Source of the DNA: Paramoeba atlantica
Taxonomy: Eukaryota; Protista; Discosea
DNA length: 64,000 nt
Assembly: GCA_977017575.1 (NCBI GenBank)
Contig: CDRNVI010000066.1
Span: 1 to 64,000, forward strand
Reading direction: 5' to 3'
Position 1 is the stretch's first letter; every line of letters begins with the position of its first letter. Below the pieces are notes generated by a model. The model was not told the origin of the DNA. It ran no database searches and worked only from the letters and a program-made list of their open reading frames with translations. Position numbers and translations under genes: made by a program. This document shows, piece by piece, positions 1 through 19,900 of the stretch.

Positions 1-233
1 TTCGGTAAAATAAATTGAGGAAACTACAGTGAAGTATTCAAATACGAGTGGATTATATTACGGTTATTTTTAATTAAGATTATTTTTAGCCCCGAAAGTG
101 AGGTCGATGGTGATAGACATGAAAAAAAGGATTTGTTTTCGGGGCTAAAAGTAATCTTAATTAAAAATAACCGTAATATAATCCACTCGTATTTGAATAC
201 TTCACTGTAGTTTCCTCAATTTATTTTACCGAA
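1..233. repeat. Long palindrome/foldback: arms 1-97 and 137-233, 39-nt spacer; contains TA|CAGTG...CACTG|TA unit 27-207
   Basis: Reverse complement of 1-97 matches 137-233 with one mismatch. Partial copies occur at 5053-5178 and 6872-6919. Confidence 0.9.
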
Positions 234-472
234 AGTATCCTGTGAGATGCTTTAAGTAGCCCACGAGGCGAATAACAAAACCTACCCCGCTTCTGCACCT
301 TTTTTATTATTCGAATATGACCTTTTCTGGGGCATATTAGTGTAGTAGGATCAAAAAAGTCGATAAATTCACAAAAAAGCATTTTTTTCAAAAAACTACA
401 GAGTTCTGCACTTTGAAAAATCATGATTTTTTTTTATTTTTTAAAAACTTTAAAAATGAGGGAAACGCATTA

Positions 473-1250
473 TCACATGACACGTAACTCTGCGAGAGCT
501 CTCGAATGCGCTATTGTTTTCCACAATTGGCCCGGGTATATGAATTTTGACCACCCCCATATTTTCGTGCACCCCCCTGTATATTCTAGCTGGGTTAATG
601 TGGAGAACGAAAAGGCATTTTCTAAGGCGCACAAGGGACGTACATGGAGCATCGCGAAGGAATTAGTCAAAAAGCTCCCACGAGTCGCTCAACCAATTGC
701 GGGTAGTAAATGTGAACGGGGGTCATCAATCTTCAGCGTCACCGAAGAAAATATTTGTTCACTCTTTCCCCTCACGAATGCCGTGCCCTCGACGTAATGT
801 ACAATGTGTAGTGCCTCACAGGCAAATTTGCTGCAAGGGGCTTCCGGGTGGCACTCGATGGTGAGTCTCCAGATCGCCATTTTTCGTCGTAAACAACAAC
901 GACTCATAGCGAATTCACAGGTGCTCAAAGTCTTGCAGGACGCGACCCCGGTACTTCGCGCAGGGGGCTTCCAAACGCTGGAAGTCTCCCACGCGACGAG
1001 CAAACACGTTGTATGCGTGTTCTAGAGGATGTTCTATGCACCTCTCTTGCTCACCAGCCGTGGTGGATTCTGTGGGACCCCGATGCCCATGATGCGTCAT
1101 GAATCATGACTCCATTTGCCAGCATGCATTCATGAGCCTGACCATGTTGTATCATGAACCATGGAAGTAATTTGTAGCATGTACGATGGGAATACCATCC
1201 GCGTCCCACAAATCTGTATATATTTCCTGGAGCATTGCGCTCACTGAACA
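473..1250 (-). pseudogene. Possible heavily decayed retroviral-type (rve) integrase relic
   Basis: Frameshifted, stop-interrupted frames give THHGH, C-x5-CE, LHIVHY..G, KYF/VTLKIDDPRSH and a downstream CDNA. This loosely follows the copia pre-integrase/integrase motif order. Weak. Confidence 0.25.
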
Positions 1251-1427
1251 TCTCGGGACATCTTATCCCGATAAGGCCGTTTCTCTTTGCTTTCCCGGGG
1301 CTGATATCCCGCGCATTTCCCTGTGTCGCCGCCGAAGGCGGCAGGTTCAGCAGGAAACGCCCTTTGCGTCAACCCCTGCTGAACCCAGTATCTCTACAGG
1401 TTGTCGCCCTGTATGAAAAAACAACTA

Positions 1428-1866
1428 GGGTCAAAAGGGCATATTTTTGTACCATTTTTTTTTCAATGACATTTCTCCCAGACGAGTGGAAAAAAATTCT
1501 TAAACTTAAAGAATCATTTTATCGTTCCTCATTAATAATGTACAGAAATATTACAAATGCTTGTATTGCGGAATTGCAATCAACTTTCACCTTCACATGG
1601 TGCTGAAGAGTTTTTGGAAATTCTAGGAAGGAATGATCATCCGGTAAGTAAATGGTAGGATTTTACTCACTCAAATATGTCGCACCTTTCGCAGCAGAAG
1701 CTCATATTGTTGCGCGAAATAGATTTTTAAAGGTGATGCAAACTTTTTTTATAACAGTTCCTTTGTAATGGAGGATTTCAATAAAATATTTAAATATATT
1801 CAAATATTACAAAAATTGTTTTCGGTCAATCGGAAGAGTTGGTACAAAAATATGCCCTTTTCACCC
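1428..1866. mobile_element. MITE with ~27-bp TIRs GGGT(C/G)AAAAGGGCATATTTTTGTACCA and 6-bp flanking duplication CAACTA
   Basis: 1428-1454 gggtcaaaagggcatatttttgtacca versus 1840-1866 tggtacaaaaatatgcccttttcaccc. caacta lies on both sides; the AT-rich interior is non-coding. Confidence 0.8.
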
Positions 1867-2397
1867 CAACTAGCGTACCTAGGCTGGAACTAGGGAGCCA
1901 TTCATGTATCTCTTCGGGGACGAACGGCTCTGAAAAATATCAGAGTGTGAAGAAAATATCAGAAATTGGTCACTTTTCTTGTCATGTAAGATACGCAGAT
2001 ACGCAAAGACTGTGAAATACGCAGGAATAACCTCTTTTGCTAGTCAGAATATTGCGAAACTGACTAAATCGACTGACTAAATCTATCGAGATTACGCGAG
2101 ATCATGCGAAAGCTCTCGGGAGCTGATTTCACCCGGGAGTGTAGTTGGACGATGCCCAAACGAGAACACGTGAGATCAAGCGAGATCATGCCCGCAGTCC
2201 TTCTGTATACAGAAGGAAAAAATGGGGGGTGGATTCGCTTAACTTAGATTTACTACAATTTTGGAAAATTACACCGCATTCGAGAGCTCTCACAAACTTA
2301 CTTGTCATATGATACTGCATTTTACGTACACAGTAGTTTCCGGGTATATGCTTTTTCCTGAATACCGTAAAAACGGAAAGTACAACTTTTACTTCTG

Positions 2398-2478
2398 AGA
2401 AACCTTTTTGAAAGTTTTTAGAATAAAGAGTGACTTTAAAGTATTTTCTTGAAAGTTTTAAAGTTTCAGTGAACCTTG
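2398..2478. mobile_element. Solo degenerate right end of the hAT-type family seen at 5243-5874
   Basis: gaaagtttttagaa..aaagagtgactttaaagtattttcttgaaagttttaaagtttcagtgaaccttg aligns with ~5800-5874. Confidence 0.8.
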
Positions 2479-3042
2479 CCTTTTAGGACGTAAACTCTGA
2501 AATAATAATCTAATAGTACTTTTACAGTTTACAAGTAAAAAGGCAAAGAAACCCATTAGAGCCCCAAGAATACAGGGCACCGGAAACCATTTTACCGGAA
2601 GCCATGGACGATCGTTGAGTATGTAGAGCACAGCACCAAAGCAAGGAAATAAAACCCAAAAAGAAAAATGAAGAAAAAGACGTTCGGAAAGCTTTTTTCC
2701 TTTATTTTCTCCTGATAAAAGTTTCCATCGATCTCTACCCATTACATAATTCAATAACCATTCCAGCATTGTAATGCGCTTCGCTTTCCTTAGTACTCGC
2801 TGTAACCGACGTGCCGTAACCGGTGTCCCTGACGACTTTTCGGGAGTTTTGGGATCTGTCATACAATAAGCCCATATAAAGGAATGACTGAAACCTCTGA
2901 ATAACATTGTCAACAACGCGGCGAGACTAAGAGCGCCCAAAAAATTTTTTAGTGGTGATGGGCCAAAATAGGACACTCCTATTAAAAAAGCAAAGAAGTC
3001 CCTAAAGCGTTCCATCGAAAGTGTTTTTATGGACTGCTTCAT
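2458..3042 (-). CDS. Hypothetical multi-pass membrane protein (194 aa)
   Basis: ATG ORF on the cluster strand with about four hydrophobic segments; no family recognised. Confidence 0.65.
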   Translation of the reverse strand: MKQSIKTLSMERFRDFFAFLIGVSYFGPSPLKNFLGALSLAALLTMLFRGFSHSFIWAYCMTDPKTPEKSSGTPVTARRLQRVLRKAKRITMLEWLLNYVMGRDRWKLLSGENKGKKLSERLFLHFSFWVLFPCFGAVLYILNDRPWLPVKWFPVPCILGALMGFFAFLLVNCKSTIRLLFQSLRPKRQGSLKL

Positions 3043-3699
3043 AGCCTTCTACGAGGTGCAAGGTTTCTAGTTTTGAAGTTTCCTATAGAAATTGCATACG
3101 GTGAATCGCTGGTATAGGAGAGAGATTTTGGGACGGCGAGATCGTCAATTTGCAAGCACATACAAAATAAATTAATAAGATTAATTTACACTAGTGGATA
3201 CCATATACTATGGTGGTACACCGAATATTGTCTAATTACGTGTATGTATTTCTTTTTAAAGATTTGTGTTCTTTTCTTTTTACTGCCATCCCATAAATGC
3301 CAAATGGGACACGAATCTCCAATTTTCGCATAAGGATTGTGAGTAGTATACTACAAACTTCCTGTGATATACTACGAATTCAATATTTCAAAAAATGTAT
3401 AAAAACAAGTGGGAGGGAAGGGGTTTCGTATTGTATAAGTTGTACAACTTCGAACGCAGATTCGAACGCGCATATCCGTTTTGATATTGCGTAAGAAAGA
3501 ATTTTAATACAATGCGCCTACAAAAACATTTATGTATAAAAACATTTAGGAAGTCTGTTAAGTTAAATTTCACACTATGCAACGAAACTCACGACTCCAA
3601 AAATTTGATCTGAGTGCACCGCTCCTTATACAAGTACGATACAGCACGTTCATGTTTGCACATACGAGTTCTACAATCAATAATATTAAAATGCGCCTT

Positions 3700-4155
3700 T
3701 TACGTAATGAGATTTTCGGATCCTGGAATGCTAACTTGACCACCGGCCTTGTGTTTCAGCAGCACTCCGGGTTTTGTGCTCGCGAGCTCAGCCATTTCTT
3801 TTCTACGATATTCTATCCAAGATTCGGGCAAATTTATTGTTATACCAAGAATTTCTTTAATAAGGAACGTGTGACCAGTGAGAAAAGTGTACCAGTCAGG
3901 CTGCATCATAAAGATAAGAGCGGCGTACATTGTAGGAAACATAAGTAACGAGTGTCGCAAATGAATGCGGCCCATACGATGCGCAAAGTGACCGAACGAG
4001 GCAGGGTTTGACCACCCTCGATTTGCTGGTCCACCGCTGAGCGTTATTGGATATAAATTGTTAAAAGGGGTTCGAAAAGAGATTGTAGTCCAATTGATGC
4101 CAAGAAAATCGGGATGAAGCACACGACGTAATAAAGATCCCTTAGTGCGCGCCAT
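3700..4155 (-). CDS. Hypothetical single-TM protein (151 aa), possibly a mitochondrial inner-membrane complex subunit
   Basis: ATG ORF on the cluster strand with a basic N-terminus (MARTKGSLLRRV) and one hydrophobic stretch (LLMFPTMYAALIFMM). Confidence 0.7.
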   Translation of the reverse strand: MARTKGSLLRRVLHPDFLGINWTTISFRTPFNNLYPITLSGGPANRGWSNPASFGHFAHRMGRIHLRHSLLMFPTMYAALIFMMQPDWYTFLTGHTFLIKEILGITINLPESWIEYRRKEMAELASTKPGVLLKHKAGGQVSIPGSENLIT

Positions 4156-4477
4156 AATAATTTAAAAGACAAGATCAAGAAAAATGAAATATAATTTTGA
4201 TGAGATTTTAAGAAGGGGTGTCGGCTTGACTTTGACAATGCCCTGTTATTGTAATCTTTAAATCTATATTTTAAACCGAGTGATAGATAGTAAGTAACGT
4301 TTTTTTCAAATAAAATGCGTTAGAAGTACCTTGTACTTAATAATCGAATATTAAAATCTTTACACGGCAATTCAAAAAACCAGCTTGCTTCTTTTCATCG
4401 TCTATCTTTACTTCTTTGTCGTTTGGAAAAGTTTGGACTCTGTACGATATTCACAAAGTGGAAATAACATGGTAGCA

Positions 4478-4903
<426 letters not shown>

Positions 4904-5052
4904 CTACACACTAATTTCAAAGAAGTATAAATTTCAAGGAAGTATAAATAGTAAGTATAATAAGTACGTTTTGTTTATTCGAACATGTTATAAGAAAACG
5001 AGATGTAACAAATCCATTAGAGGACATGAATATTAAGTAAGTAAGGTAGTTT

Positions 5053-5178
5053 CAGTGAAGTATTCAAATACGAGTGGATTATATTACGGTTATTTTTAAT
5101 TACGGTTATTTTTAATTAAGATTTTTAGCCCCGAACAAAAATACTTTTTTTCATGTCTATCACCATCGACCTCACTTT
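5053..5178. repeat. Partial inverted copy of the 95-207 foldback unit, with a 16-bp internal duplication
   Basis: cagtgaagtattcaaatacgagtggattatattacgg...ttttagccccgaa...tcatgtctatcaccatcgacctcacttt is the reverse complement of 95-207. Confidence 0.9.
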
Positions 5179-5242
5179 TATACGAAACACAAGCCTTTAT
5201 AAAATGATCACAGACGAATCCAATGGCTTGGGCGCTTAAAAG

Positions 5243-5874
5243 CAGGGTTCGCGGAAACTTTTTTATAGTAAAAAAAAGTTTTTTTTTTCAGTGGATGAAA
5301 GTTACTTTAAAGTACTTTTTATACTTTTTTTTACTATAAAACTTTCAACACGGCCCTCGACCAGTCAACAAACCTCCGTTTAACGGCCGAGCCGTCAAAC
5401 ACCGATATATTAGGTCCCAAACTCTCAAAAAACGGTCTAGGAGTTGATTTCGGAAAAATATGTTTTTTTTATTTTCATCCAAAATTTTTCAGTTTTATTT
5501 CTCAAAAATTCAAATATTGCTATGATCCCCCTGGTGGGGAGGGGGGGGGCAGGGGGTACCCATCGGAATTGTTGAAAAACTAGTGATCTTGTCACTCAAT
5601 TCGATTCATACGTCTTTGTAAACATTTTTTTCGAAAACTCACCTGAAACGATATCGGGCCACAAATCGGGCACGACGAATTAACCTACGGTAGCGAGGGA
5701 GTAGTATCTCCCTCAATAAATTGTAATGAATACAGACGAATCAAAATCATGATGAAAGAAATTCTGTGATTCTAAAGTATACGAAGAAAAAAAAAGTTTT
5801 TGAAAGTTTTTAGAAAAAAAATAAAGTAACTTTAAAGTACTTTCTTGAAAGTTTTAAAGTTTCCGCGAACCCTG
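5243..5874. mobile_element. hAT-type non-autonomous element (632 bp), 19-bp perfect TIR CAGGGTTCGCGGAAACTTT, 8-bp TSD CTTAAAAG
   Basis: TSD at 5235-5242 and 5875-5882. CAGGG terminus plus 8-bp TSD is the hAT signature. Confidence 0.92.
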
Positions 5875-5905
5875 CTTAAAAGTTACTCAAAAAGTGTGTT
5901 CAAAA

Positions 5906-6853
5906 CAGAGGTCCCTAAAACTATTTTAAATAGTTTACTATCTATAAATATTTTATAGATAGTTTATAGTGTTTCAAGAAAATTTATAGTACTATAAACC
6001 TCATTTATAGTACTATAAACACTATACTGTATGGTACTATAAAAACTATATGGTCTTTATCAGTGTTTCATGTCCAGGAAGGCACTCGGTAGACAGATCG
6101 GTCGATGGACCTGGAGGAATTTCGCGGGGCAGGAGAGAGCCGATGGAGGTATAGAGGCTTAGAGGGGTCACGAGATGTCAGGTAGAGCAAGTGGCGTGGA
6201 TACGCTGACGCGTAGAAAAAAGTGAAAAGAGTTGTACTTTTTGTGCAGAAATGGAAAAAGTCGGGATCCTATAGCTCACAAGTTCTTCCCATAATGCTCT
6301 TCCTTGTAGCGTGCAAACATTATAGTTGTCCAACGATTACGTCCGCATTACAGTTGTCCAACGAGTTCCCGTTAGATCACTCGTTGGATCCTAGACGTGG
6401 CGTATTCAATGGCAAGGTAAAACACAAAAACACATCACAGAGCCTGTAAGATTCAATATCTGAAAAATTCATAATCTTTTGAAGAATTTCGATGAATCAC
6501 TTACCCCCTATTTCACATTTACACATTGTACTTCGACAGGAAAAGCGACCTAAGAAGACAAGGCGTCTGGGCTGGAACACATCTGAAATTAAAGTAGGTC
6601 GACTTCCCCATCGACTCCAACGAAGTGTGGAAAAATGATTTGAGCTTGACCACGACGCTTGTTGGGCATAGTGGTGTGAAAAACAGTGAGAAATCTTTCA
6701 AGAAAACGGGAGTGATAAAAAATGAATTGCGTCGAGTCGGCATTTCAAGCAATACTTTTAGAAAAAACTTTCTAAGGAAAATAGTAAAAAAAATATAATT
6801 TATAGTACTATAATAGTACTATAAAATAGTTTTTGTAGTTTTACGGACCTCTG
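5906..6853. mobile_element. Second hAT-type element (948 bp), TIR CAGAGGTCC(C/G)TAAAACTA, 8-bp TSD GTTCAAAA
   Basis: TSD at 5898-5905 and 6854-6861; TIR 17/18 identical; subterminal tactataaa-type repeats at both ends. Confidence 0.92.
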
Positions 6854-6956
6854 GTTCAAAAATTATTAATTTACGAGTGGATTATATTACGGTTAATTTA
6901 ATTAAGATTAATTTTAGCCAAAAATAACCTTAAAAGCGTAATTAAATAATTAAATA

Positions 6957-7391
6957 CCGTAGAAACTTCAATTAAGGGTAATTAAAATTAAGGCAACTTT
7001 AATTAAGGCAGCTTTAATTAAGGAATAATTATTTTTTTGTCATTTTGGGGAAAAAATTGGGAAAAATTAATTTCATGATTCTGACTCAGACTTCTCCTTT
7101 CAATGATCGTTTTAGCATTTCTCTCACATGTTGAATTGGTTGAAGACCGTAAAGGTAGGCGAAACAGGCGAAGCTCGTCTAGAAAAGTTCGAAAAATATG
7201 ACAAATGATCAGAAATTGAGCACTTTTAGCAGAAGTGTGATACTTATGCTACAAACGACAATATTTATATAAGACCTGTTTTGGGCTTTTATCAGCGCCA
7301 TTTTAATTAAGGCAACTTTAATTAAGGCAATAATTAATTTTTAAATCCGTTCTGCCTTAATTACTTTTATCCTTAATAACCGTTTCACCGG
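6957..7391. mobile_element. Tc1/mariner (pogo/Tc2-like) MITE, TA|CCG...CGG|TA, degenerate ~40-bp TIRs
   Basis: taccgtagaaacttcaattaagggtaattaaaattaaggca versus RC of right end taccggtgaaacggttattaaggataaaagtaattaaggca. TTAATTAAGGCA subrepeats lie near both ends. Confidence 0.7.
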
Positions 7392-7566
7392 TATAACACT
7401 GTATACTAAAAGCACTCTTTTAGCAAAACAAATTCAACTTCATTATTGAACTATCCAGACCCTCTAATATAGAATTCGTGCCCTTCTCACATCCATAGTT
7501 ACACTTCAGATCCTGATTCTGGTATTCACTACGAAGAAGTTATTGTTTCCTTTTTTACTGTTTCTC

Positions 7567-8577
7567 TTAAATTTCCTCTTGAGCGTATCGATCAATAAGC
7601 ATGAGACCACATGCGACATCAAGTATGGACTTAAAAAAGCTTTTACCCCAACTCTGCACAACTTCGGCAAACTTCATTCGAAGTTTGTCTGCTTCATAAG
7701 TTTCCAACTTTAGAAATTGCGCAGGCCTATGGTACATAAGAGCCTCGATCATTGGCGAAGATAAATATGCAAGAGTAACTGATTCACCATCATCAACGTA
7801 AGCACGAGCGACAAATTGATTTTCCATCACCGATAATGGAGGAAGCAAAGAAATTATTTCTGCAGATACAATAAAAGGAGTTTCGCTCCCTTGAACTGGT
7901 AATTGAGAAATTTTCATGGTTGCTAAGGAGGGAGAAGTTTGCTCAGGAGTATGCAGCTGGCCTTGAGATATGGTCTTTGCTCCTGTGCAAGGTGTCGCTT
8001 CGATTTCTGATTCAAGATTGTGAAGCATGCGAGTTCTATTGAAACGTTCGGCTCGTTTTTTTCGTTTCTGAGTGTGCTGTGCATCTAGAGCGGCAACAGA
8101 ACCTCCTAATACAGTCATGCAGCTGTCATTAAGAAGAAGAACACGATTTCTGATTCGAACGTTTTCAATGAGGACTTTTGCACCCGGAACCAGACCTTCA
8201 TCAAGCTGAACGCATGGGGAGTGTTCAATTGCAATCCAATCCCTCACACCGTCCGTCAGGCAAAGTTTGCGTGGTCCTTTGCAAGTTGGCATGTGAGACG
8301 CGGATTCTGCCTTTGACTGTTCCAGGAGACTTTGAGAAATATTTTCTATTTCATTCAGCTGAAAAATATGTCGTGAGGTTATAGTGCAGTCATCCACTAA
8401 TGGAAAGCCTTTCAAAAAGGGAACGCGTCTGAAATCTTGATAAAGAAGCATCGTTAGAGCCTCTAAATCATTTTGTGCTGTAGAACGGCACCACCATTCC
8501 TTCCACCACTTGAGCTCAAGATCAATATTACAAATATTTTTCAGCGTGCTGCGTACCACATTCCATGGATCGCTCAT
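7567..8577 (-). CDS. RMI1: RecQ-mediated genome instability protein 1
   Basis: OB-fold motif RKLCLTDG..IAIEH..L..L.PGAKVLI.NV.IR..VLLL plus a C-terminal YVDDG segment. Confidence 0.85.
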   Translation of the reverse strand: MSDPWNVVRSTLKNICNIDLELKWWKEWWCRSTAQNDLEALTMLLYQDFRRVPFLKGFPLVDDCTITSRHIFQLNEIENISQSLLEQSKAESASHMPTCKGPRKLCLTDGVRDWIAIEHSPCVQLDEGLVPGAKVLIENVRIRNRVLLLNDSCMTVLGGSVAALDAQHTQKRKKRAERFNRTRMLHNLESEIEATPCTGAKTISQGQLHTPEQTSPSLATMKISQLPVQGSETPFIVSAEIISLLPPLSVMENQFVARAYVDDGESVTLAYLSSPMIEALMYHRPAQFLKLETYEADKLRMKFAEVVQSWGKSFFKSILDVACGLMLIDRYAQEEI

Positions 8578-8678
8578 TCAAAAATACGGTGCATTCGAAG
8601 ACGCTTGGCAAGTAAAATTTTATGCGTTTTAGTTTGTTGAATTTTTTAGCTTGTAAGATTTTAGCGAAACATAAACTA

Positions 8679-9140
8679 CCCCATGCCATTAATAACGATA
8701 ATGATAAACACCATTTTTTTTTGAGATTGCTATTATTGCCATTGGAGGGAGTGCAAGTGGCCCTTCGAAGGTCTCAAAAAATACCTACAGCGTTCGCCAC
8801 CGGTCGTCACCGGTCGTCGCCGACTCCCAGAAAACGACACTTTGAAGGCCAAAATGCTCAACTTTATGACTGACTGATCAATATAATTATACATCGGCAA
8901 AAACAATTTAGCATTTTATATACCACCAGTTTATACATTCCTAACTATTTAGTTCCATTAATGCAAAATTCTCGCTGTGCTAAGAAATTTTGTGATACTT
9001 GTGGGGAAGATTAATGGTCGATCCTTCGAACCTCAAAAAATACCCACAGCGTTCGCCACCGGTCGCCATCGATCGTCACCGGTCGCCATTGGTCGTGACC
9101 GTTCGGCAGCGACCTACAGGTACTGTCTGCACCCCCTCCA
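8679..9140. repeat. Decayed copy of the family at 49405-50917, including two copies of a block with 10-bp ACCGGTCGYC-like repeats
   Basis: 8679-8720 resembles the 49405 TIR region. ccttcgaa..ctcaaaaaatacc.acagcgttcgccaccggtcg occurs at 8762-8823 and 9024-9140, and inverted at ~49985-50105. Confidence 0.8.
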
Positions 9141-9189
9141 TTGGAGAATACGCGGTCAACAGCAGATACCTGGAGACATGTGGGGGAGA

Positions 9190-9330
9190 TACCTGGGAGA
9201 TATGATAAGAAATTGCTCTACGGTTTTCTAGCCGTTTGGTTTCACAATATACCACTTCTTGCCTCCTACCCAGAGCTCAATCCGCCTTGTGGCGCTCTGG
9301 CCTATGATCACAATAGGCGATTAACCAAGA
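9190..9330 (+). pseudogene. Possible Tc1/IS630-type DDE transposase relic
   Basis: FGFTIYHFLPP then, after a short gap, PELNP (9270-9284) and LW. This resembles the LPPYSPELNPIE..W motif. Confidence 0.4.
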
Positions 9331-9394
9331 GAGGATTCGTGTGTCCCTAGGCATGATGTTAACTTCGAAATTTGACCAAACCTGCGAGATAATC

Positions 9395-9700
9395 ATTTAG
9401 AAGTTAGATGGTGAGAAGTCAACGACTAGAAGATCATGAGTTCGATGTTTAGAACTACAGGTTGAGCGACTAGAGACTAGATGAGGTCTGAGTTAGATGC
9501 TTTGACAGTGAAGCTTAGAAATTAGATGCTTAGATAACGGATGTTAGAAGTTAGACGTTTGGAAATAGAAGTTGAGAAATCAGGTTCCGTGAGGTCTGAG
9601 TTAGATGCTTCGATGTTGACTTTGTAGGTTAGGTGCTTAGACGGCGGGTGTTAGAAGTTAGGTGCTAAAAATGGAGTCTCAGAAGTAGGTGATTGGAAGT
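9395..9700. repeat. Degenerate TTAGRN-rich tandem array with ~109-bp higher-order repeat
   Basis: Recurrent ttagaagttagatg/ttaggtg; tgaggtctgagttagatgctt at ~9482 and ~9591. Confidence 0.75.
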
Positions 9701-9730
9701 TATACTCTAATTAAAATTCCAGCAAGTTAG

Positions 9731-10015
9731 ATGTTTGAGAAGAAGACCTGTACCAGGCAGATTCCTAGAGACGCAAGGCCGAGTACTGCAGATAGCGAGA
9801 GACTGCAAGTAGCAAAGCTTCTCGAAGAAGGGAAATACTCCGACCAGAAGGTGAGCGGCAGCTTGTTGTTAGGGATTGTAAAGGTATTCCAGGCGCGAAA
9901 GCAGGCGCTTGACGTTCAGGAAGGGGGCCCTGAAGACAAGTTGCCTAGCGAGAGGATGACTAGAGAGAAAAGAGGTCCACTTCATGGTTTGATTGACACC
10001 TACGATGATCTTTAG
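9731..10015 (+). CDS. Orphan 94-aa ORF with a Rad21/Rec8 N-terminal-like motif
   Basis: KVSGSLLLGIVKVFQARKQAL resembles kleisin [21 protein letters not shown]. It lies opposite to the cluster strand inside the repeat island. Confidence 0.3.
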   Translation: MFEKKTCTRQIPRDARPSTADSERLQVAKLLEEGKYSDQKVSGSLLLGIVKVFQARKQALDVQEGGPEDKLPSERMTREKRGPLHGLIDTYDDL

Positions 10016-10762
10016 CCTCTTGCTCTTTATACAGTGTGTCAAGCCCAGCACGGAACAATTTGAAGGAGCCAACGCGAAGAAGATTGCGCCAGAAGCTAAA
10101 AACAACTTTAAGCGGCGAAGCTGAATGTGAAGTATTCGAGACGCTTCTGTTTTCCTTCTGTCTCTGTTAATCCTTATGCTTTTGTATCCAATTTTTTAGT
10201 TGGTTCGTTAAACGTGGAGATTTTCAACGAGGAGCGCGCAGGGGTGGCGAGTGACTACTATCAGCGCAAAAAAAAGCAACCTACATACTACGTTTCTGAG
10301 AAACGTTAAAATACTAAAATATATTTAGGGGGCAGTTAAATGTTCAGAGGGAGCAATATTTTCACAAAATATCAAGGTATATTAACGTTGACTTTGTGGA
10401 ATATCATCATAGAGAATTAAGAAGAATTGCTTACCCTATTCGCCGAGTGCTCGTAAATATAACGCGATATAGTAAATCGCGACACAATAAATGAAGAGAT
10501 GATAAATCACGGGAGAAAGTAAGAAGGGAACACAACAAAGTTCATGACGTTTGCACCATCATTCAGTTGGAAGTGCTACGGAAAATTGCGAGCTCCCAAA
10601 TATTCTTCCCCATACAGAGAGAAACATAATTTTTTCTTATGTAAAATAGGGAAAACGTGACTATAAACAAGTGAAGTTTATATACAACTGCATTTAAAAG
10701 TTTATATACAAAATGTATTATGCAGTCCAGGCCACACTGTCGGCCCCTCAGGCCACAAAGTA

Positions 10763-11514
10763 CACCGTGAGAGCTTTTGACCTAATTCCTTCGGCATTCG
10801 ACAGATCTAAAAAAAGTGGAACGTTTCCCGTATTTTTTTCACACGTGGAGCCCCCCACATGAGTAACGGGTCAAAAAAACATGAAAAAAGGCAATTTTTT
10901 GAAATATTTCGCGAAAAGTACAATTTTTAGGTGTTTTTTCCTATAAAATGGTAGCTCATCACATGCTATTTAGGAAAACCCCTGTTAAATCTACTGAGAA
11001 TCTACTGAGAAACTTATTCTAACACATTCCGGAACGAACCCCCCCAATTACGCACAAGATAGCCCGATGCGAACTCTCTGAACGTCTTAAAATCATTCGT
11101 CAGACCAAAAAAAATCAGTTAAAGAAATTAACTGGTTAATTTCTTTAACCTTTGGTTAAAGTTCTTTAACCTTTGGTTAACGGTCATTAAAAAAGCTTTT
11201 GTGATGATTAAGCGCAGTCCCCGTCAGGCTCTGAATTGTATGACTTCAATGACCAAACGCATGTACATGTAAATTATGCAGCGTGTAAAGGGGAACCATA
11301 CAAGGTACATGTATTGGTTTGTCCCTTCAAATAAGTATTTTTTGTGATATTTTTCATTTTGTTTGTCAAAAAAGACTTTTTAAGGGAAAAATCAACTTTG
11401 GGGGTGCACACAGGGGGTCTAGGGGTCTCCGCGGATGAAAAAAATACGGAAAACGTTTTACTTTTTCGAGATCTGTCGAATGCCGAAGGAAATAGGTCAA
11501 AAGCTATGTCGGTG
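10763..11514. mobile_element. Inner element with ~94-bp TIRs (CACCG...GCTTTTGACCTA.TTCCTTCGGCATTCGACAGATCT...)
   Basis: 10763-10856 versus RC of 11422-11514. Confidence 0.85.
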
Positions 11515-11606
11515 TGCTAGCTCCTCCGTTAAATAGCGGTGGCTGTTGGTAAACGGGCTTCGCAAATTGCTTCCCACTAACGACGCCGCGTATGGCTGAA
11601 AATATA

Positions 11607-11699
11607 ACCGCCGGGAGTCGAACCTGCGACTACCAGATTATGAACGGCAGGTCTTGCCAAATGGATTACCTGGGTTCGAGTCCCGCAACCTACGTTTTT
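11607..11699 (-). ncRNA. tRNA(Met)-like relic with two oppositely oriented B-box/T-arm motifs; not a foldable tRNA
   Basis: Minus strand reads taatccatttggcaagac-ctgccgttCATaatctgg-tagtc-gcaggttcgactccc. Plus strand has gggttcgagtccc (11672-11684) followed by TTTTT. Acceptor and anticodon stems do not pair. Confidence 0.35.
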
Positions 11700-12041
11700 G
11701 AGCACCGTGATTTGTGCCTAAATCGAGGATGGAGGGGGGCTGGACCCCCTTTTCTCACCCTGCTGGATCCACCCTGCCCCGGACACCATAAAGAAGGGAG
11801 AGGCGGAGGTTGTATACAACCCCCGCAAACACGGTGTACTCCGTGGCCTGGGGGGCAAACAGTGTGGCCTGGACTGTACCCCCCTACTTATCTGTCACTA
11901 CTTTTCGCGAAAAGACGACAGATACATGTAAATAGGGGGGATAGGGGTGCGTCAGATATCTAGGCGGATCAGTGTGCGACAGATAACTAGGGAGGGGGTA
12001 TGTCACAAAAAAAGTCAGAACATGGAATTACAGAAACGATT

Positions 12042-12297
12042 TAAACCCCATTCCGGGTTAATGTACCTCGCTATTGTACCGGGGGGTACAATAACTGGGA
12101 ACGCTTGGTTTTATTGTACCCCCCCCTGCGCAAAAGAGGGCGCCGCGAAGCGGCGCCATTTTTTTCGCCTTTTTACAGATTTTCATTTTCATTTTGATTA
12201 CAAATTTACCATTTCTACCAGCGAAGACATGAAAATAGAGAAGTATCTGTATGTAGTTATTATACCGGGGGGGATACATTAACCCGGACGGGGTTTA
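12042..12297. repeat. Small inverted-repeat element, 14-bp perfect core TCCGGGTTAATGTA / TACATTAACCCGGA
   Basis: 12052-12065 and 12275-12288, extendable by AAACCCC/GGGGTTT. The interior holds gtacc(c/g)-run motifs and a GCGAAGC hairpin. Confidence 0.75.
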
Positions 12298-12390
12298 TAA
12301 TGGCACCACGAACGACCATTCGCTTTAAACACAAAAAGAAAAAATGTAAGTTTCATTTTATGATTTTTAAAAAAAAAACTATTCTTTATA

Positions 12391-12481
12391 CTCTTCGTTA
12401 AACGCGATGGTTGTTTTCAACTTAGAAGTCACTCATGCTGCGCGCTTCGCGTTGAAAACTCCCACGGCGTTTAACGAAGAG
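12391..12481. repeat. Hairpin with 31-bp arms (27/31 paired) and 29-nt loop
   Basis: ctcttcgttaaacgcgatggttgttttcaac ... gttgaaaactcccacggcgtttaacgaagag. Confidence 0.85.
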
Positions 12482-12671
12482 CCTAAAAAAGAAAAATCGC
12501 AAAAAAATGATCATGAATAACTATTTTTTTGGGTCAAAAAGCCCCTCCTCCTTTTAGGCGAAAATTGCGAAAGTTTACTCCAAATTTGGGCCGTTTTTGA
12601 TGCCTTACCAATAGGGGTATGAGGCGAATCTGACGAAAAAAACTCTGGTAGCTGGAAAAAAACTGGTAGCT

Positions 12672-12850
12672 GAGGTCCAAAACTCTCAAAATACGTTTTA
12701 GGAGTCGATTTTGGAAAAATATTATTTTTACTTTTTTTTGGGTCCAAAAAAAGTTTTTTGTTCACCTCAAAAATTTCGGAAATTTTGACGTTGTCGGACC
12801 CTTCCTACGCGTACCAGGGGGGGTACCCCCAGGTGGGGTGGTGGAAAATC
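12672..12850. repeat. Dispersed repeat homologous to the interior of the hAT element (5412-5580)
   Basis: ggtcc.aaactctcaaaa.acg...taggagt.gattt.ggaaaaata and the GC-rich ggggtaccc block are shared in direct orientation. Confidence 0.75.
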
Positions 12851-13470
12851 ATAGCCGCGGCATACTCTAACACTTCCCTGCGCTCGATTTTGAAAAGCAA
12901 AAAATTCGAAAAAATTAATAATTAATGGCAGGGAGAGTACATAGTTTTCGACAAAAAAACGCGATTTTCAGGCCAAAATGTGAAATTTTAACCCGAATTT
13001 GGTCCGTTTTTGAAACCTTACCAGTAGTATTTTAGTTTTTTTAAGCTTTAACGGACGTTTTTTTAAGACACAAATTTTTTGTAAGAAAATCCTGCGTGCA
13101 TGAAAATAAGTTGATAATATTTATTATCAACGTATTTAATAGTGCCATTGTGTTGTGTGCAGCAAGGTTCTGGTGAAAACAGTTGTGCAATTCACGTGAT
13201 AAATAATATGTATCGCACCTTATTTGAAAACCTTATTTGAAAACCGTGATATTGACATTCTTTCCCGTCGTAACCTTTGTGAAAATTGGAGTCCGATAGC
13301 TCCCTATGTTCTACTTTAACCCATATAATATATGGGAGAGACATGTATGAGTTTACAAAGGAAAAACAATGAGAAAATTATAGACTGACGGAAAAACACC
13401 TAGGTAAACCTACATGTATTAATTATGTATGTATTTATTATGTGGTTATCGAATGTATTAATATTTTTAA

Positions 13471-14344
13471 TTAGCGGACACCCGCCTTCCTCCACTCTTT
13501 TACCGCGGAGGATAGTATCGCGGCGTTGCCTTTTTGAACAGCCACATTAATGGCTTGTAGTGCATGACGCAGGAAACCTTTCCTGTCATACGTATACCTT
13601 GCGATCTCCTTTAGGAGGAGTACGGTGTGCTTCCCTGCCACACCAAAAACGGTAAATGCAAGGGGGTAGAAATGCATACCCCTTTTCGTGGCCATGTCAC
13701 TGTGCGCTTTTACTTTCAAGCTTTTCACCCTTTCTAGAGTGTTGCCAGGCGCTACCCATTCGGCCTTAACATAAGAAGGGGCAAGGGGGTTAGCGACGGT
13801 CACGTCCACCAGACATATCTTCCCTCCCAGCATAAAGCAGACGTCGGGGCCCTGACCAGCAGAGAATCGGGGTTCATGATTGTCAGGAGTGAATCCGTAC
13901 TGTCGTAGCAAGTGCACGAAGGCATTCTTAACAAGTTTGTGGCGAGTGGCCGCAGTGTCGCCTTTTGAATACAAAAAACGTTGCTAAATATAATGTGTAT
14001 TCTTAGTCTCTGGTTAGCGGCATCTTTTAAGAAGGATGCAGATCCCTGACGATGATCCATTTCCTTAAAGCACAATTTCGAAGTACTGTCAGCATTCTTG
14101 CAATCACACAAGACGAAATAAAATAAAAGGATAGATCTCCAAATTTAAGTGGGTGCTCAACGTTCCCAGACTGAACATTCTTCGCATTGCTTGAAATATC
14201 CGTGACCTGTCTCATTGTGGTCAAGCTTAATTGGCTTGGTCCATCAGCCACCCGCTGATTAACAGCATCGCATAGTTCGTTGCTAATACGACGCGCTGCT
14301 CGCTTCCGAGACCTTGGAGTAATATCTGACTCTTCCATGGTCAT
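13471..14344 (-). mobile_element. 3' fragment of a CRE/SLACS/CZAR-like non-LTR retrotransposon; REL endonuclease ORF 13471-13974 is open, upstream part frameshifted
   Basis: RH..V, PDV, DVTVANP..PSY, K.K, FYPLAFTVFG..G and AVQKGNA form the restriction-like endonuclease C-terminus typical of CRE-clade elements. No RT domain lies in the window. Confidence 0.8.
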
Positions 14345-14440
14345 ATCAGGATACTAACTTGATTAACGAACAGTTTAAAGTAACTAACACTTATGACTTT
14401 GATTAAAAGTACACGAGCGTGGGAAAAAGTATGGGGAATA

Positions 14441-15483
14441 CTCCCCCTTTCATAATTCTTTATAAGTTCGAGCCCAAAATGATTCATGGTTCTATATAAA
14501 TTTATATACAACTTTAAAACGCCTGAAAAACGCCAAACGATCAGTGGAAAAAACGGAGCTCGCGGCGCTGCGCGCCGAGTATTTCTCATTCTGATTCGCG
14601 TATCAAATGTATATTTTGAATTTCCTTTTTTAGACATTAAGCAGTTTAATACTTTTAGAAACTTCTCTTTCGTTTCTTTGTTTCGGTCCTCTTTTTTTGT
14701 CAAATTCATCAATGTGGTCAAATGTGTGTGACTTTACATATCAAATTCGGTCACCTATTCATGCAAACACACCATGAGAGCGCATAAGAACTAGTAGAAA
14801 TAATGATCATAATTTATATAAATATTTTTATAAGTAAACCCACCTCGGTACCAAACACTTATAAAGCTTTATAGTCTGCGTCATATTGATCCCCCCTCTC
14901 TGGAAATTTTAGTTTTTTTATCCGATTTTGCTCATCTATGCAGCATTCGAGAGATCTCATTCCCATAGGAAAGTACTTTGCCACTGTTTTTACCTTTTAG
15001 CCAGACGCCTCGAAATAGTGGAAAACTACACGTTTTTTTACTAAAATCTTGAATAAATTTAAAAATTGCTTATTTTTTCATTACTTTTTCTTCTTCCAGC
15101 ACCCCGAAGAGGCCGAAACGGCACGTATCCTCGTCTGAATCCCTTAAAAATACCTTTAGTTACATGAAAAATACGAATTCCTCGAAAAAACGCTTTGTAG
15201 CAAAGCGGCGATCACACATGATTTTTGTCATTTTCCTAACTTTTTCTGTTTTTTCCTAACTTTGGGATTCTCTCCAGGAGGCACTCCCCCTCCTTACGTT
15301 TATTGCGGCAAAATACTTTCCTACCGGAACGAGATCTCTCGAATGCTGCAAAGATGAGCAAAATCAGATAAAAAAACTAAAATTTCCTGAGGGGGGGATC
15401 AATATGACGCGGACAGTATAATATAAATATAAATCGCCGAAACACTTATAGTTTATATTTATAAAGAATTATGAAAGGGGGAG
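14441..15483. mobile_element. Stowaway-like Tc1/mariner MITE, perfect 25-bp TIR CTCCCCCTTTCATAATTCTTTATAA, TA TSD on both sides
   Basis: TA at 14439-14440 and 15484-15485; TIRs at 14441-14465 and 15459-15483. Confidence 0.92.
14874..15416. mobile_element. Nested MITE with ~110-bp TIRs, right end GACGCGGACAG|TA
   Basis: 14874-14985 versus RC of 15307-15416 (gcgtcatattgatcccccc...gcagcattcgagagatctc...ggaaagta.tttgcc). Confidence 0.9.
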
Positions 15484-15688
15484 TAGTAAGAAGTTGGATA
15501 AAAGGTACGAACGCCTTTATGTAGGTCCCAGAGGCACAATAACATCGTATTTTGCACCACAAGAAAGCAGAAACCCTGTATTAGTACCGAAACTTTTTTC
15601 GGTAAAAAAGCCCCCTGTATCACTTAGAACACAATTAGATAGGATAATGTAAGACTTTTTAGAAGTCACTCTGTAAACTAAAATATGT

Positions 15689-15728
15689 GGTAATAGGAGG
15701 TAATCGGAGGTAATTACCTCCTATTACC
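15689..15728. repeat. Perfect 16-bp stem hairpin
   Basis: ggtaataggaggtaat-cggaggta-attacctcctattacc. Confidence 0.85.
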
Positions 15729-16380
15729 GTCCAGGGTATGATATATGTAACGTAATTAATATTTTAACCCGATAAAATATGTGTAAATTACTCTCTGGGC
15801 TTCTTTTAACCCGTAGGCGCATGCCTTCAGCTTGTAGTACCCCATTGGGGTAGAAAGGAATCTTCCTAGGCAATAAAGATACCGCTTCTGTAACATTTCG
15901 TTCCCTCGCTTTTTTTGGCGACGGACCCCCCTAGTTATCTGTCGCACCCCTACCCCCCCCCCCTGGTTATCAGTCACCTTTTCTCGAAAAGTAGCGACAG
16001 ATAACTAGGGGGGGTACAGTATATACAAAGTTTATTTAACAAATGAAGTTTACATTATAAAATTATTGTACTTACTGTATCCCCGTAGTTGTCTGTCATT
16101 ACTTTTAGGAAAAGATGTCTCCTCTTTCAGTCTTGACGGATCATTTCATGCTATCTATCCTCTCCAACAAGGCCGAAGCCACGAATTTGTGGGTTTCCAT
16201 ATGGTTTCGGTATTTTCGGAGCGTACTACCTTATTCGCGATTCGAATCACTACATCTATGAGCAGCTCTGCTGCGAGCAGACCCGGAACTTCTCCTCTCT
16301 CTACGGCTGCCGGAGAGAAGCAATCCGAAGGAGTACTGCGTGCGGGACTCCGACCGGAGCAATCATTTTATTGCTTGCTG

Positions 16381-16668
16381 CTACTCCTTTGCGTCGAACA
16401 TATCACATTTATAAGCCCGTAGAACAGATTGACCAAAGGCTAGCAATAAGCTATCCCCTTGAACCTCTTTTACTAAGCGTTCTTCCTCTTCTTCATTGAT
16501 ACAAGATAACGGAATTTCTGCTTGCGGTATCACATGGGTTGTAGCGGATACTGTCTCTGTGGTCATATAAATTTTTTTGGTATCGGGCTCAAAGCTATCC
16601 TCCTTGTGTCTACCAGAATATTTTGTGGAGGATAGATGCAATTGATCATCGGATTCTCCTCTATTCAT
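16381..16668 (-). CDS. Hypothetical protein (95 aa), possibly truncated
   Basis: ATG ORF on the cluster strand. Coding-like sequence continues after the stop toward the TE island. Confidence 0.45.
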   Translation of the reverse strand: MNRGESDDQLHLSSTKYSGRHKEDSFEPDTKKIYMTTETVSATTHVIPQAEIPLSCINEEEEERLVKEVQGDSLLLAFGQSVLRAYKCDMFDAKE

Positions 16669-16908
16669 AGCTCACTTTAAAATCATAGAGAAAATCATAT
16701 TAGCAAAAGATAAAAAAGATTTAAAAATGGTACTTGGGACCTCAAAAATGATCTGAATCAGTAAATGGTAGTACAATGCACTATGATGTTTACATCTAAA
16801 CTACATGTACATGTAAATACGTGGTTCTGCAACACAAAATGCGTAAAATTTCCGGATTGAAGTATAGTGATCGCGGCTTTGAAGGGCAAACGATTGGCAT
16901 GCAATCAA

Positions 16909-19900
16909 TTATGAATTAAACAAATCAACGTAACGATTGACTAAGTTGTGAGCGGAATGTGTAGAGTCTGAAGGCGCATCAATTGCGATTGGATTAATAA
17001 GATAAGAAAGTTGTGCTTCGGATTGAGCAGCGCTTTGGAATGCAGAATAATCCTGAGGCTGAGTAATTTGCAAGTTAGAATGTAAGGATATTTCTGGAGT
17101 GGATGTAATTGATACTGTTTCGGGAAGAGGGGGGCCAGCGCGCGCTCGACGTTCTTGTTCAATCTCCTGTGCAGTAGATTGATACCCTTTTAATTCCCAT
17201 TGCCCAGTCAAAGCGTTATATACCGGTTTCTCATTGTCTTCTGGAAGGAACACTTCCTTGGGACCTTCTTCCGTTCGGTTGCCCTTGAACGGCCACCATG
17301 ACCTTCCGCCAGAAGTCGGAATTTTGAATGTATCCTTCTGTTCACTTTCATGTATTTCTGACATTTTCTTTTCCGATAATCTCGAGACAGATCTTAAATT
17401 AGGCTGTAAAGTTCGAATTGATTCAGAAAATTCTCTGTGTGAGTCTTTTCTTCCCCATAGCCAGCGAGAAATTACATTTCCTTTAGAAATATGCCCCGTA
17501 CCTTGTATTGTGTCAAGTAGCTGTATTTGTTCCTGTACAAGGTAAGATAAATTCTGCTGACATCTTCGTAAATCGCCAGCGAAAGATATTTCTTTTTGAA
17601 GTTGGATTAAAATCTTCCGCCCTTGAGTAGTAAAACCGCATTCATTAAGAATAATAGCATGTGCAAACCTGAATGACGAATAGCTGTGATGCGATTCAGC
17701 GCGTGGCGTTGCTACTCTTGATTTATTCAACGTGGCATCTCTTAGACGTAAAAATTGGAATAGTTCGGTTTGAAAAAAACTTCTTTCGTTCAAGTACGAG
17801 GAACGCCACATGTTTGGCTTTTGAGTCCCGCCCCAGAGTGCAATCTTTCGCAATGGATAATTCGGTTCGTCTAGTTTGTGTGCCAGCAAATAGCAGATTT
17901 GAGCTTCTTCTGCTTTATCATGCAACTGCAGTGCGTCAGACCATCTCACAAGTGCCGTTGAAACGCATGATCTTTGCGACATATTAACTAGCAATATACG
18001 AATATGATCCTCCCATCTTTCAATAGATGGGGCTGAAATATCGGGCGATAGCGCGTTACCCTCCAGAAGCAGCGTGGTAAGAGGAGAACTTGTAGCAAGT
18101 GTAGCCTCAACAAAGGAAGATATGACTCTTTTGTAAGCGTCCCGGTCGCAAAGCGTTGCAATCAAAAGTGCAATGGCCCAGTTTCGCCCGGATAACGCCG
18201 CTTCAATCGCTTCTTGACGCTTTCCTTGTAAAAGGTAGGGCGTAATTTCCTTATCAAGATCTGAGTTATGGTTTTTCATACTCTCTCGAAATTCATTTTC
18301 ATGATCGGTGAATGCATTCTTCCCAAAAATTTCATCAAAAGATCTGTGCTGGTTTTCAGCAGACCAATCCAGGGGTTGATCTAAGTTCGCCAATAAATAA
18401 CGCTGTAGTGGCCCGTAAGACGGGAAAATTAAGCGAAGATATTGTATTATATCATCTGTCTTAGCTGCGTTATTTAACGGCCCGGGATATTGATCAAGAT
18501 TCTTAATATATTTTCCTCCTAAAGGAGTCGCACGGTTTTCTGCGAGGAGATTACGGATTTCTTTTACCTGTAGACGTTTGTTCACGGTATCCTGAATAAG
18601 GATGTGTCCAAACGGGAGAAAACGTACTTTGGGACTCTTCATTTTTTCATCCACCCAAAAACGTAACAATGAAGCTCTCGAGGTTTTTGCAATTTCCGAT
18701 TCTTGACAAATATTTTGTGGGGCGTGCCGCTCCACGGAAGGAAGGCTTGTTCTCTCTAAAGTAATTTCTGCAGTTGAGTTTGTTTGACTTAGAGATGCAA
18801 TCTCTTGATCAAATGATTTTGAATTTAATCGATTGGCGCATGTATTTCTGGAAAAGCCTTTGGATGGAGGTTGACTCAGTCGTCTCATCAATTCTTCTCT
18901 TAGAAAATAGGCCCGTTCGTACGGCATTGATACAGGAATTCCTCCTGACAAAAGTACTTGTACTGTTGACAAATCAGAAAGTTCAAAACAGACGTCGTCT
19001 TGCTGCAGAAATATTTGTGGAGAGCTTTGCAACTGTATCGCAGCAGATTCTTGAATATGCTCCGAAAGATGTGCTTTAGGTATGTCTTTCACACGAGTTG
19101 TGGGGTTTGTTGAAATTAGTTCTATAGTTGCTTCCTTAGCGCAGGAATTACCAGCGCATGATTCTCTATGATGACGGTTTCCCACTTCTTGTGCTATTTC
19201 GGGTGCCTGTGTCATGTCCGGATATACGTGTCGTGTTGGCTTCAGATTTCTACTGTCAACGTACTTAACAGCTTCTGTTGTTGTCGGAGAACAACGAATT
19301 GACGTTTCTCTACCGACAATACCTACCGATAGATCTGTTGATGCAATGCTCAGCGTTGATGGCACCGTGGCTTCAACTTCTTTTGAATTGTCGTGAATAA
19401 GAGGAATTCGTTCCGATATTTTGTTTTCTTCGTCCGTTGGATGTTCCATTTTCGAATTGTGGATGAGATGGCAATTACTTGCATCTAGAGCCGAATTTTG
19501 TAACGACGAGGACGTTGCAAAAGGTTGGATATTTGAAGCGCTAGGTTGAACACAGATGTCTCTTTTTGGATTATCCTCACCTGCTTTGGACTTCAGTGAT
19601 ATGTCTTCCTCAGGGTGTGTAGGATAAGCGAGTATTTCTTCTTTGATACAGCATTCGCCCGCATTGATATCAACATTTCTAGACAGCTCTTCTGTGCAAA
19701 AGCTGGCTTCCCGTAAACCCAAAAGATTAGATGACTTGCGGGGAATGTCAAAAAGTTCATCAATTTCAGATCTAGGATGCGATTTTTGAGGTGTCAAAAC
19801 CGCTTCTTGTGGAGACTTCTGCCTCATTGTGGAGCATGACACGTCAGTGCTCCACTGAAATATTCTCTGCGTTGAATAGGATGCCTTTCCAGGAACTGGT

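Follow-up and report, generated by a model that had tools for sequence, protein, structure and literature searches.

Transposons of the hAT superfamily are characterized by 8-bp target site duplications (TSDs) and YARNG tips (PMC3014272). Hermes, one of the autonomous hAT models, shows a preference for the target pattern nTnnnnAn and carries subterminal AAGT repeats to which its BED domain binds (PMC10368747). Merlin elements have TSDs of 8 to 9 bp, a conserved terminal 5'-GG-3', and terminal inverted repeats (TIRs) of 24 to 462 bp (PMC8101967). Kinetoplastid genomes are described as containing only retrotransposons and, in Bodo and Perkinsela, degenerate Merlin relics; the copies of Bodo saltans and Perkinsela are without TIRs and TSDs (PMC8101967). 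Neither a hAT element nor any class II element besides Merlin is reported for kinetoplastids in the searchable literature.

The locus described here lies in a window of 64,000 nucleotides (the whole stretch of DNA analysed), in which two adjacent elements, E1 and E2, are located between an RMI1-like gene and a ubiquitin-eL40 (UBA52) gene (Table 1). Rereading of the sequence bears out the coordinates, TIRs, and perfect 8-bp TSDs that an earlier, sequence-only reading had given for both. The TIR of E1 is CAGGGTTCGCGGAAACTTT, the inverted ends matching at 19 of 19 positions, and that of E2 is CAGAGGTCC, then C or G, then TAAAACTA, with 17 of 18 positions matching. E1 and E2 alike start with CAG and end with CTG, the tips being CAGGG in E1 and CAGAG in E2. 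The two insertions are separated by 23 bp.

The region is AT-rich and filled with repeats, a setting that favors the view that inverted and direct repeats occurring by chance, or an artefact of the assembly, mimic transposons here. The probability of such TIRs and TSDs arising by chance is nevertheless negligible, with 0.02 to 0.05 occurrences expected per TIR pattern in the window and a probability of ~3e-5, under the local composition, for an exact 8-bp direct repeat in a given place. Precise empty sites, the same structure in an independent assembly, and related ends plus a third TSD-bounded copy at other loci, all described below, also contradict this explanation and render it highly improbable. 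E1 and E2 are confirmed as real TIR/TSD insertions.

Table 1. Features of the E1/E2 locus and of related or accompanying elements. Positions without a label refer to the window; L numbers denote contigs and loci of the ENA assembly.
Feature	Position	Strand	Remarks
Solo right end, E1-related, ending ...AAAGTTTCAGTGAACCTTG	2405..2478	+	86% identical to E1 5797-5874
Ubiquitin-eL40 (UBA52) gene	4478..4867	-	Downstream neighbour on the coding strand; PDB matches to eL40 fusions
Host repeat left of E1	5040..5234	.	5053-5178 match the palindromic repeat at window 27-207; high run depth
E1 left TSD, CTTAAAAG	5235..5242	.	Same 8-mer as 5875-5882; one copy kept at the empty joint 5233->5874
E1, 632-bp non-coding TIR element	5243..5874	+	TIRs 5243-5261 and 5856-5874
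E1 right TSD, CTTAAAAG	5875..5882	.	Same 8-mer as 5235-5242
E2 left TSD, GTTCAAAA	5898..5905	.	Same 8-mer as 6854-6861
E2, 948-bp non-coding TIR element	5906..6853	+	TIRs 5906-5923 and 6836-6853
E2 right TSD, GTTCAAAA	6854..6861	.	Same 8-mer as 5898-5905
Host repeats right of E2	6862..7387	.	6861-6919 repeat 5058-5114; high run depth
Separate multi-copy repeat, 434 bp	6954-7387	.	Copy at L123:3046-3448, 88% identity
RMI1-like gene	7567..8577	-	Upstream neighbour on the coding strand; Pfam RMI1_N_C, E = 4e-22
E2 solo end	L123:19443		95% identical
CAGGGGTCTGAAAATC end with E2-type motif	L126:13411		
End with E1-type TIR	L129:2647		Every E1 ACTTT changed to ACTAT (E2-type motif)
1.6-kb element with E1-type right end	L131:7462-9057		8-bp TSD GTATGTTT on both sides
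Tc1/mariner transposase ORFs, apparently intact, 336 and 373 aa	L128:9944-12062 and 13372-14493; L131:15444-16454; L130:10001-11122		DDE_3 and HTH_Tnp_Tc3_2
PIF/Harbinger-type DDE_Tnp_4 ORFs, 245 and 189 aa	L124:5263-6000; L129:7748-8317		

Four public runs from the same organism yielded contigs that were compared with window positions 4300 to 8700 (4,401 letters). Run contigs join 5233 to 5874 with 9 ambiguous bases, which is the E1 site lacking the element and carrying one 8-mer. Three runs show the corresponding E2 site, a joint from 5897 to 6854 with 8 ambiguous bases and again a single 8-mer, and further run contigs skip E1 and E2 together (5240 or 5241 to 6854), leaving a variant 23-bp spacer in between. 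These empty sites fix the tips of both elements at CAG...CTG. Word depth in run X1 amounts to 43 to 80 for unique genes and to several hundred to ~3,000 over positions 5035 to 7386, an excess indicating that the elements and the surrounding sequence are multi-copy; in the run contigs, the depth of the elements is several-fold to tens-fold that of the unique flanks. The empty-site joints themselves have a depth of ~400 in X1, compared to 43 to 80 for the unique flanks. At this depth, the empty sites of E1 and E2 must represent paralogous copies of the host repeat, not an allele.

The linkage of the elements to UBA52 and RMI1 is reproduced in an independent ENA assembly (ERZ24900291), in which a 99% identical match to the RMI1-like protein (P0001) is encoded on the 86.5-kb contig L121. 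This contig is collinear with window positions 1 to 18548 at 98.8% identity, and its copy of UBA52 contains the Pfam domains ubiquitin and Ribosomal_L40e. It shows the order UBA52-E1-E2-RMI1 with TSDs identical to those of the window, and a chimeric origin of the locus is thereby excluded. Differences between L121 and the window amount to 6 of 632 positions in E1, 10 of 948 in E2, and ~1% in the remaining spacer. RMI1 in the run contigs carries the L121 variants, which makes the window a second genotype or haplotype. As the E1 and E2 insertions are common to two genotypes ~1% apart, they predate the split between these. The recent invasion proposed in the sequence-only reading is not supported, given this common presence and the several diverged sister families at other loci.

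Both elements are embedded in host repeats (Table 1). According to the empty sites, the spread of the host repeat came first, followed by the insertion of E1 and E2 at their close spacing into this particular copy, with each insertion leaving its own 8-bp duplication. The window contains further repeated sequence outside the locus. Its start is the centre of a long palindrome (window 1-582 and L121:18370-18949), and in L121 the mirror symmetry extends over at least 580 bp on either side of a ~230-bp foldback repeat (window 3-232). This palindrome could be a genuine inverted duplication or else an artefact of foldback during assembly, and the beginning of the window near it suggests an assembly break. 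A ~520-bp element with TIRs of ~90 bp (GCGTCATATTGATCCCCCC...TAGTTTTTTTATC...) occupies window 14874-15410. The ORF at window 13471-14344 (L121:4229-5105) groups at 90% identity with proteins of up to 1143 aa in a cluster of 23; several members carry RVT_1, which identifies the ORF as a fragment of a multi-copy non-LTR-type retroelement.

Neither element has recognizable coding capacity. E1 contains no ORF longer than 52 aa, and the longest ORFs of E2 comprise 75 and 77 aa. The ORFs of both are without a match in Pfam, and searches with the two E2 ORFs yielded no homologues, the cluster being a singleton and the search returning the query alone. The ends of E1 are occupied by subterminal repeat zones covering roughly the first and last 110 bp. 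The 110 bp next to each tip together contain 17 copies of the motif AAAGT, and the 412-bp interior contains 0, compared to a mean of 1.1 and a maximum of 5 in 2000 shuffles. In E2, the motif TATAGT is found 10 times in the ends versus once inside, a count reached in 0 of 2000 shuffles, and it is mostly part of the palindrome ATAGTACTAT, which is present at both ends. Small size, the lack of coding sequence, TIRs with TSDs, and many copies are features of MITEs and other non-autonomous elements, although E2, with 948 bp, is above the usual MITE size.

The interior of E1 contains an additional feature, a module of ~65 bp (5412-5475) with the organization GGTCCAAAACTCTCAAAA.ACG.TTTAGGAGT.GATTT.GGAAAAATAT. 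Copies of this module with 75 to 84% identity lie outside any E1 ends at window 12673-12734, L125:2282-2347, L127:1951-2014, L129:2259-2313 and 4595-4649, and L130:11592-11657. A G-rich GGGGTACCC stretch follows the module both in E1 and at window 12673-12830. To judge from these sequence matches, the E1 interior seems to have been borrowed from another dispersed repeat.

Eleven further loci of the same ENA assembly (209 kb), reached via protein clusters of a retroelement and of Tc1 transposases, contain relatives of both elements (Table 1). The related ends at other loci are 75 to 95% identical and form several families. Within an end, all copies of the subterminal repeat change together across the families, as would be expected if the repeat were a protein-binding site. 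The L129 end mixes an E1-type TIR with the E2-type motif and thereby places E1 and E2 in one clade, which comprises several diverged families with a likeness of 75 to 86%. The L131 copy (L131:7454-9065 including the duplications) has kept both 8-bp TSDs and is missing exactly the first 15 bp of the left TIR, which may be the trace of a failed excision or repair. Its ORFs show no Pfam match, and a 178-aa ORF matched itself alone in an exhaustive representative search. A metagenome scan with the 16-base tip of E1 returned at least 120 loci, 2 of which extend to 19 bases and 0 of which continue into the element. These tip matches were rejected as relatives and are attributed to chance, since none continues into E1. 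BLAST of E1, E2, and the region in the metagenome follow-up yielded nothing.

Assignment to a superfamily relies on the structural comparison with described elements. All three complete TSDs (CTTAAAAG, GTTCAAAA, and GTATGTTT) have the hAT length of 8 bp, YARNG fits both CAGGG and CAGAG, the TIRs are short (18 to 19 bp), and arrays of short subterminal repeats are present at both ends, as is typical for hAT elements. The likeness to hAT elements of non-autonomous type, Ds-like derivatives and hAT MITEs for which Ac, hobo, Hermes, and Tol2 are the autonomous models, also includes the ~100- to 140-bp extent of the subterminal repeats, the non-coding interior, the multi-copy occurrence, and, from few sites, an apparent leaning of the targets toward nTnnnnAn. 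In contrast to known hAT elements, no hAT transposase was found with these ends in the sampled loci, the host is a kinetoplastid-like euglenozoan, and E2 is larger than a typical MITE.

The fit to the nTnnnnAn target pattern, claimed by the sequence-only reading for the TSDs of E1 and E2, persists as a tendency. Among the three complete TSDs, T2 and A7 fit 5 of the 6 positions (p = 0.017) and, with the flanks of the solo ends included, 10 of 14 (p = 0.004), from few sites; the L131 TSD GTATGTTT breaks the A7 rule. The E1 repeat AAAGT contains the Hermes-type AAGT.

The P superfamily has to be weighed against hAT at this point. P-superfamily elements reportedly have TSDs of 7 to 8 bp and CANRG tips, following Yuan and Wessler in 2011, and both the 8-bp TSDs and the tips CAGGG and CAGAG would fit non-autonomous members mobilised by a P-type transposase encoded elsewhere. 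Because these features are common to the two superfamilies, CAG termini and an 8-bp TSD alone are insufficient for hAT, which they had been said to define. The targets, however, lean to the nTnnnnAn pattern described for hAT, and the AAAGT subterminal repeats resemble the AAGT sites of Hermes; with both features pointing to hAT, membership in the P superfamily is considered unlikely.

No hAT transposase domain was found among the called genes of the window region or in the 209 kb of further loci, where the transposon-type domains found are RVT_1, DDE_3/HTH_Tnp_Tc3_2, and DDE_Tnp_4 only. Ten long unannotated ORFs show no hAT domain in Pfam. The motif ER.FS is characteristic of the hAT C-terminal domain, and a regular-expression scan of the sampled loci for it gave no credible match. 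Protein searches revealed no homology in the interiors of E1, E2, or the L131 copy. Of the hAT identity proposed from the sequence, the structural hallmarks therefore hold, but no hAT transposase accompanies them in the window or the 209 kb.

That no transposase is linked to the E1 or E2 ends in the window and the 209 kb is also what would be seen if the elements belonged to another or an undescribed superfamily with 8-bp TSDs, such as short-TIR MULE, Merlin, Novosib, or Zisupton-like elements. Three complete TSDs of exactly 8 bp each argue against this explanation. For Merlin, the terminal 5'-GG and TIRs of at least 24 bp are incompatible with the tips CAG/CTG and the 18- to 19-bp TIRs of E1 and E2, and this candidate was ruled out. 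The Merlin copies of Bodo saltans and Perkinsela resemble E1 and E2 as class II elements in a kinetoplastid-type genome, with a TSD of 8 to 9 bp for the superfamily, whereas the two elements described here combine CAG tips and short TIRs with perfect TSDs. Such a different superfamily is accordingly rated as quite improbable. The preferred reading, considered probable as a whole, is that E1 and E2 are two independent non-autonomous class II insertions, most likely of the hAT superfamily, in an older multi-copy repeat between RMI1 and UBA52, two genes of a one-strand array.

Under the hAT reading, a multistep mechanism can be proposed. Here, a transposase encoded elsewhere would bind the subterminal arrays, AAAGT in E1 and ATAGTACTAT in E2, followed by pairing of the 18- to 19-bp CAG...CTG ends and excision of the element. 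The last step would be insertion across an 8-bp staggered cut, the repair of which would give rise to the 8-bp duplication. Both the hAT identity of this transposase and its binding to the subterminal repeats are inferred.

The host is called a euglenozoan of kinetoplastid-like type. A run of long ORFs without introns occupies the window from 16.9 to 64 kb; every one of them lies on the minus strand, and their products are ordinary eukaryotic proteins. A one-strand polycistronic layout is found in kinetoplastids and also in diplonemids (PMC10161547). A contig of the ENA assembly that shares a retroelement cluster of at least 90% identity with the window region contains a gene whose product has the Pfam "Kinetoplastid PH-like domain," and the best Atlas cluster of this protein is euglenozoan. 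In PDB rankings for eL40, pyrophosphatase, and SelD, trypanosomatid chains come first, marginally; four further proteins of uncertain lineage gave no match in the PDB.

Five loci carry a spliced-leader-like ...GATACAGTTTCTGTACCTTGTTG, with GT next in two of them. The core CAGTTTCTGTAC is that of the kinetoplastid and diplonemid spliced leaders. Rfam revealed no spliced-leader RNA family, and the spliced-leader-like string had no match in the searchable literature. The TE-rich loci show ...AAGATACAGTTTCTGTACCTTGTTG at L122:~5092, L125:6134, L126:2941, L129:~12934, and L130:~4188; two of these loci continue with GTAC, as in an SL RNA gene, and in others unrelated sequence adjoins the string, as in SL-headed retrocopies. 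Five tRNA genes and a tRNA-Sec gene are tightly clustered at L125:787-1503, on the same contig as a selenophosphate synthetase gene (18317-19393).

E1 and E2 are not the only class II sequences in this genome. The Tc1/mariner transposase genes (Table 1) fall into 90% identity clusters with 12 to 13 members on different contigs, and two of the ORFs are arranged head to head in L128. Together with the PIF/Harbinger-type genes, they indicate an abundance of class II elements in this genome. The scarcity of class II elements assumed by the sequence-only reading, which knew of Merlin only, agrees with the searchable kinetoplastid literature (PMC8101967) but not with this genome and its Tc1/mariner and PIF/Harbinger genes.

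Structurally, E1 and E2 are ordinary non-autonomous transposons, and the novelty lies in the host lineage. The broader proposal is that they represent a diversified, possibly still mobile hAT clade in a kinetoplastid, the first hAT for Kinetoplastea, alongside Tc1/mariner, PIF/Harbinger, and more in a rich class II repertoire; its chances are judged to be slightly short of even. If true, it would overturn the view of kinetoplastid genomes as essentially without cut-and-paste transposons, and class II elements would have been lost in the parasitic trypanosomatids and not be missing from the group as a whole. It would also make endogenous cut-and-paste systems available in a lineage whose genes stand in one-strand polycistronic arrays, in which intergenic insertions must coexist with trans-splicing signals.
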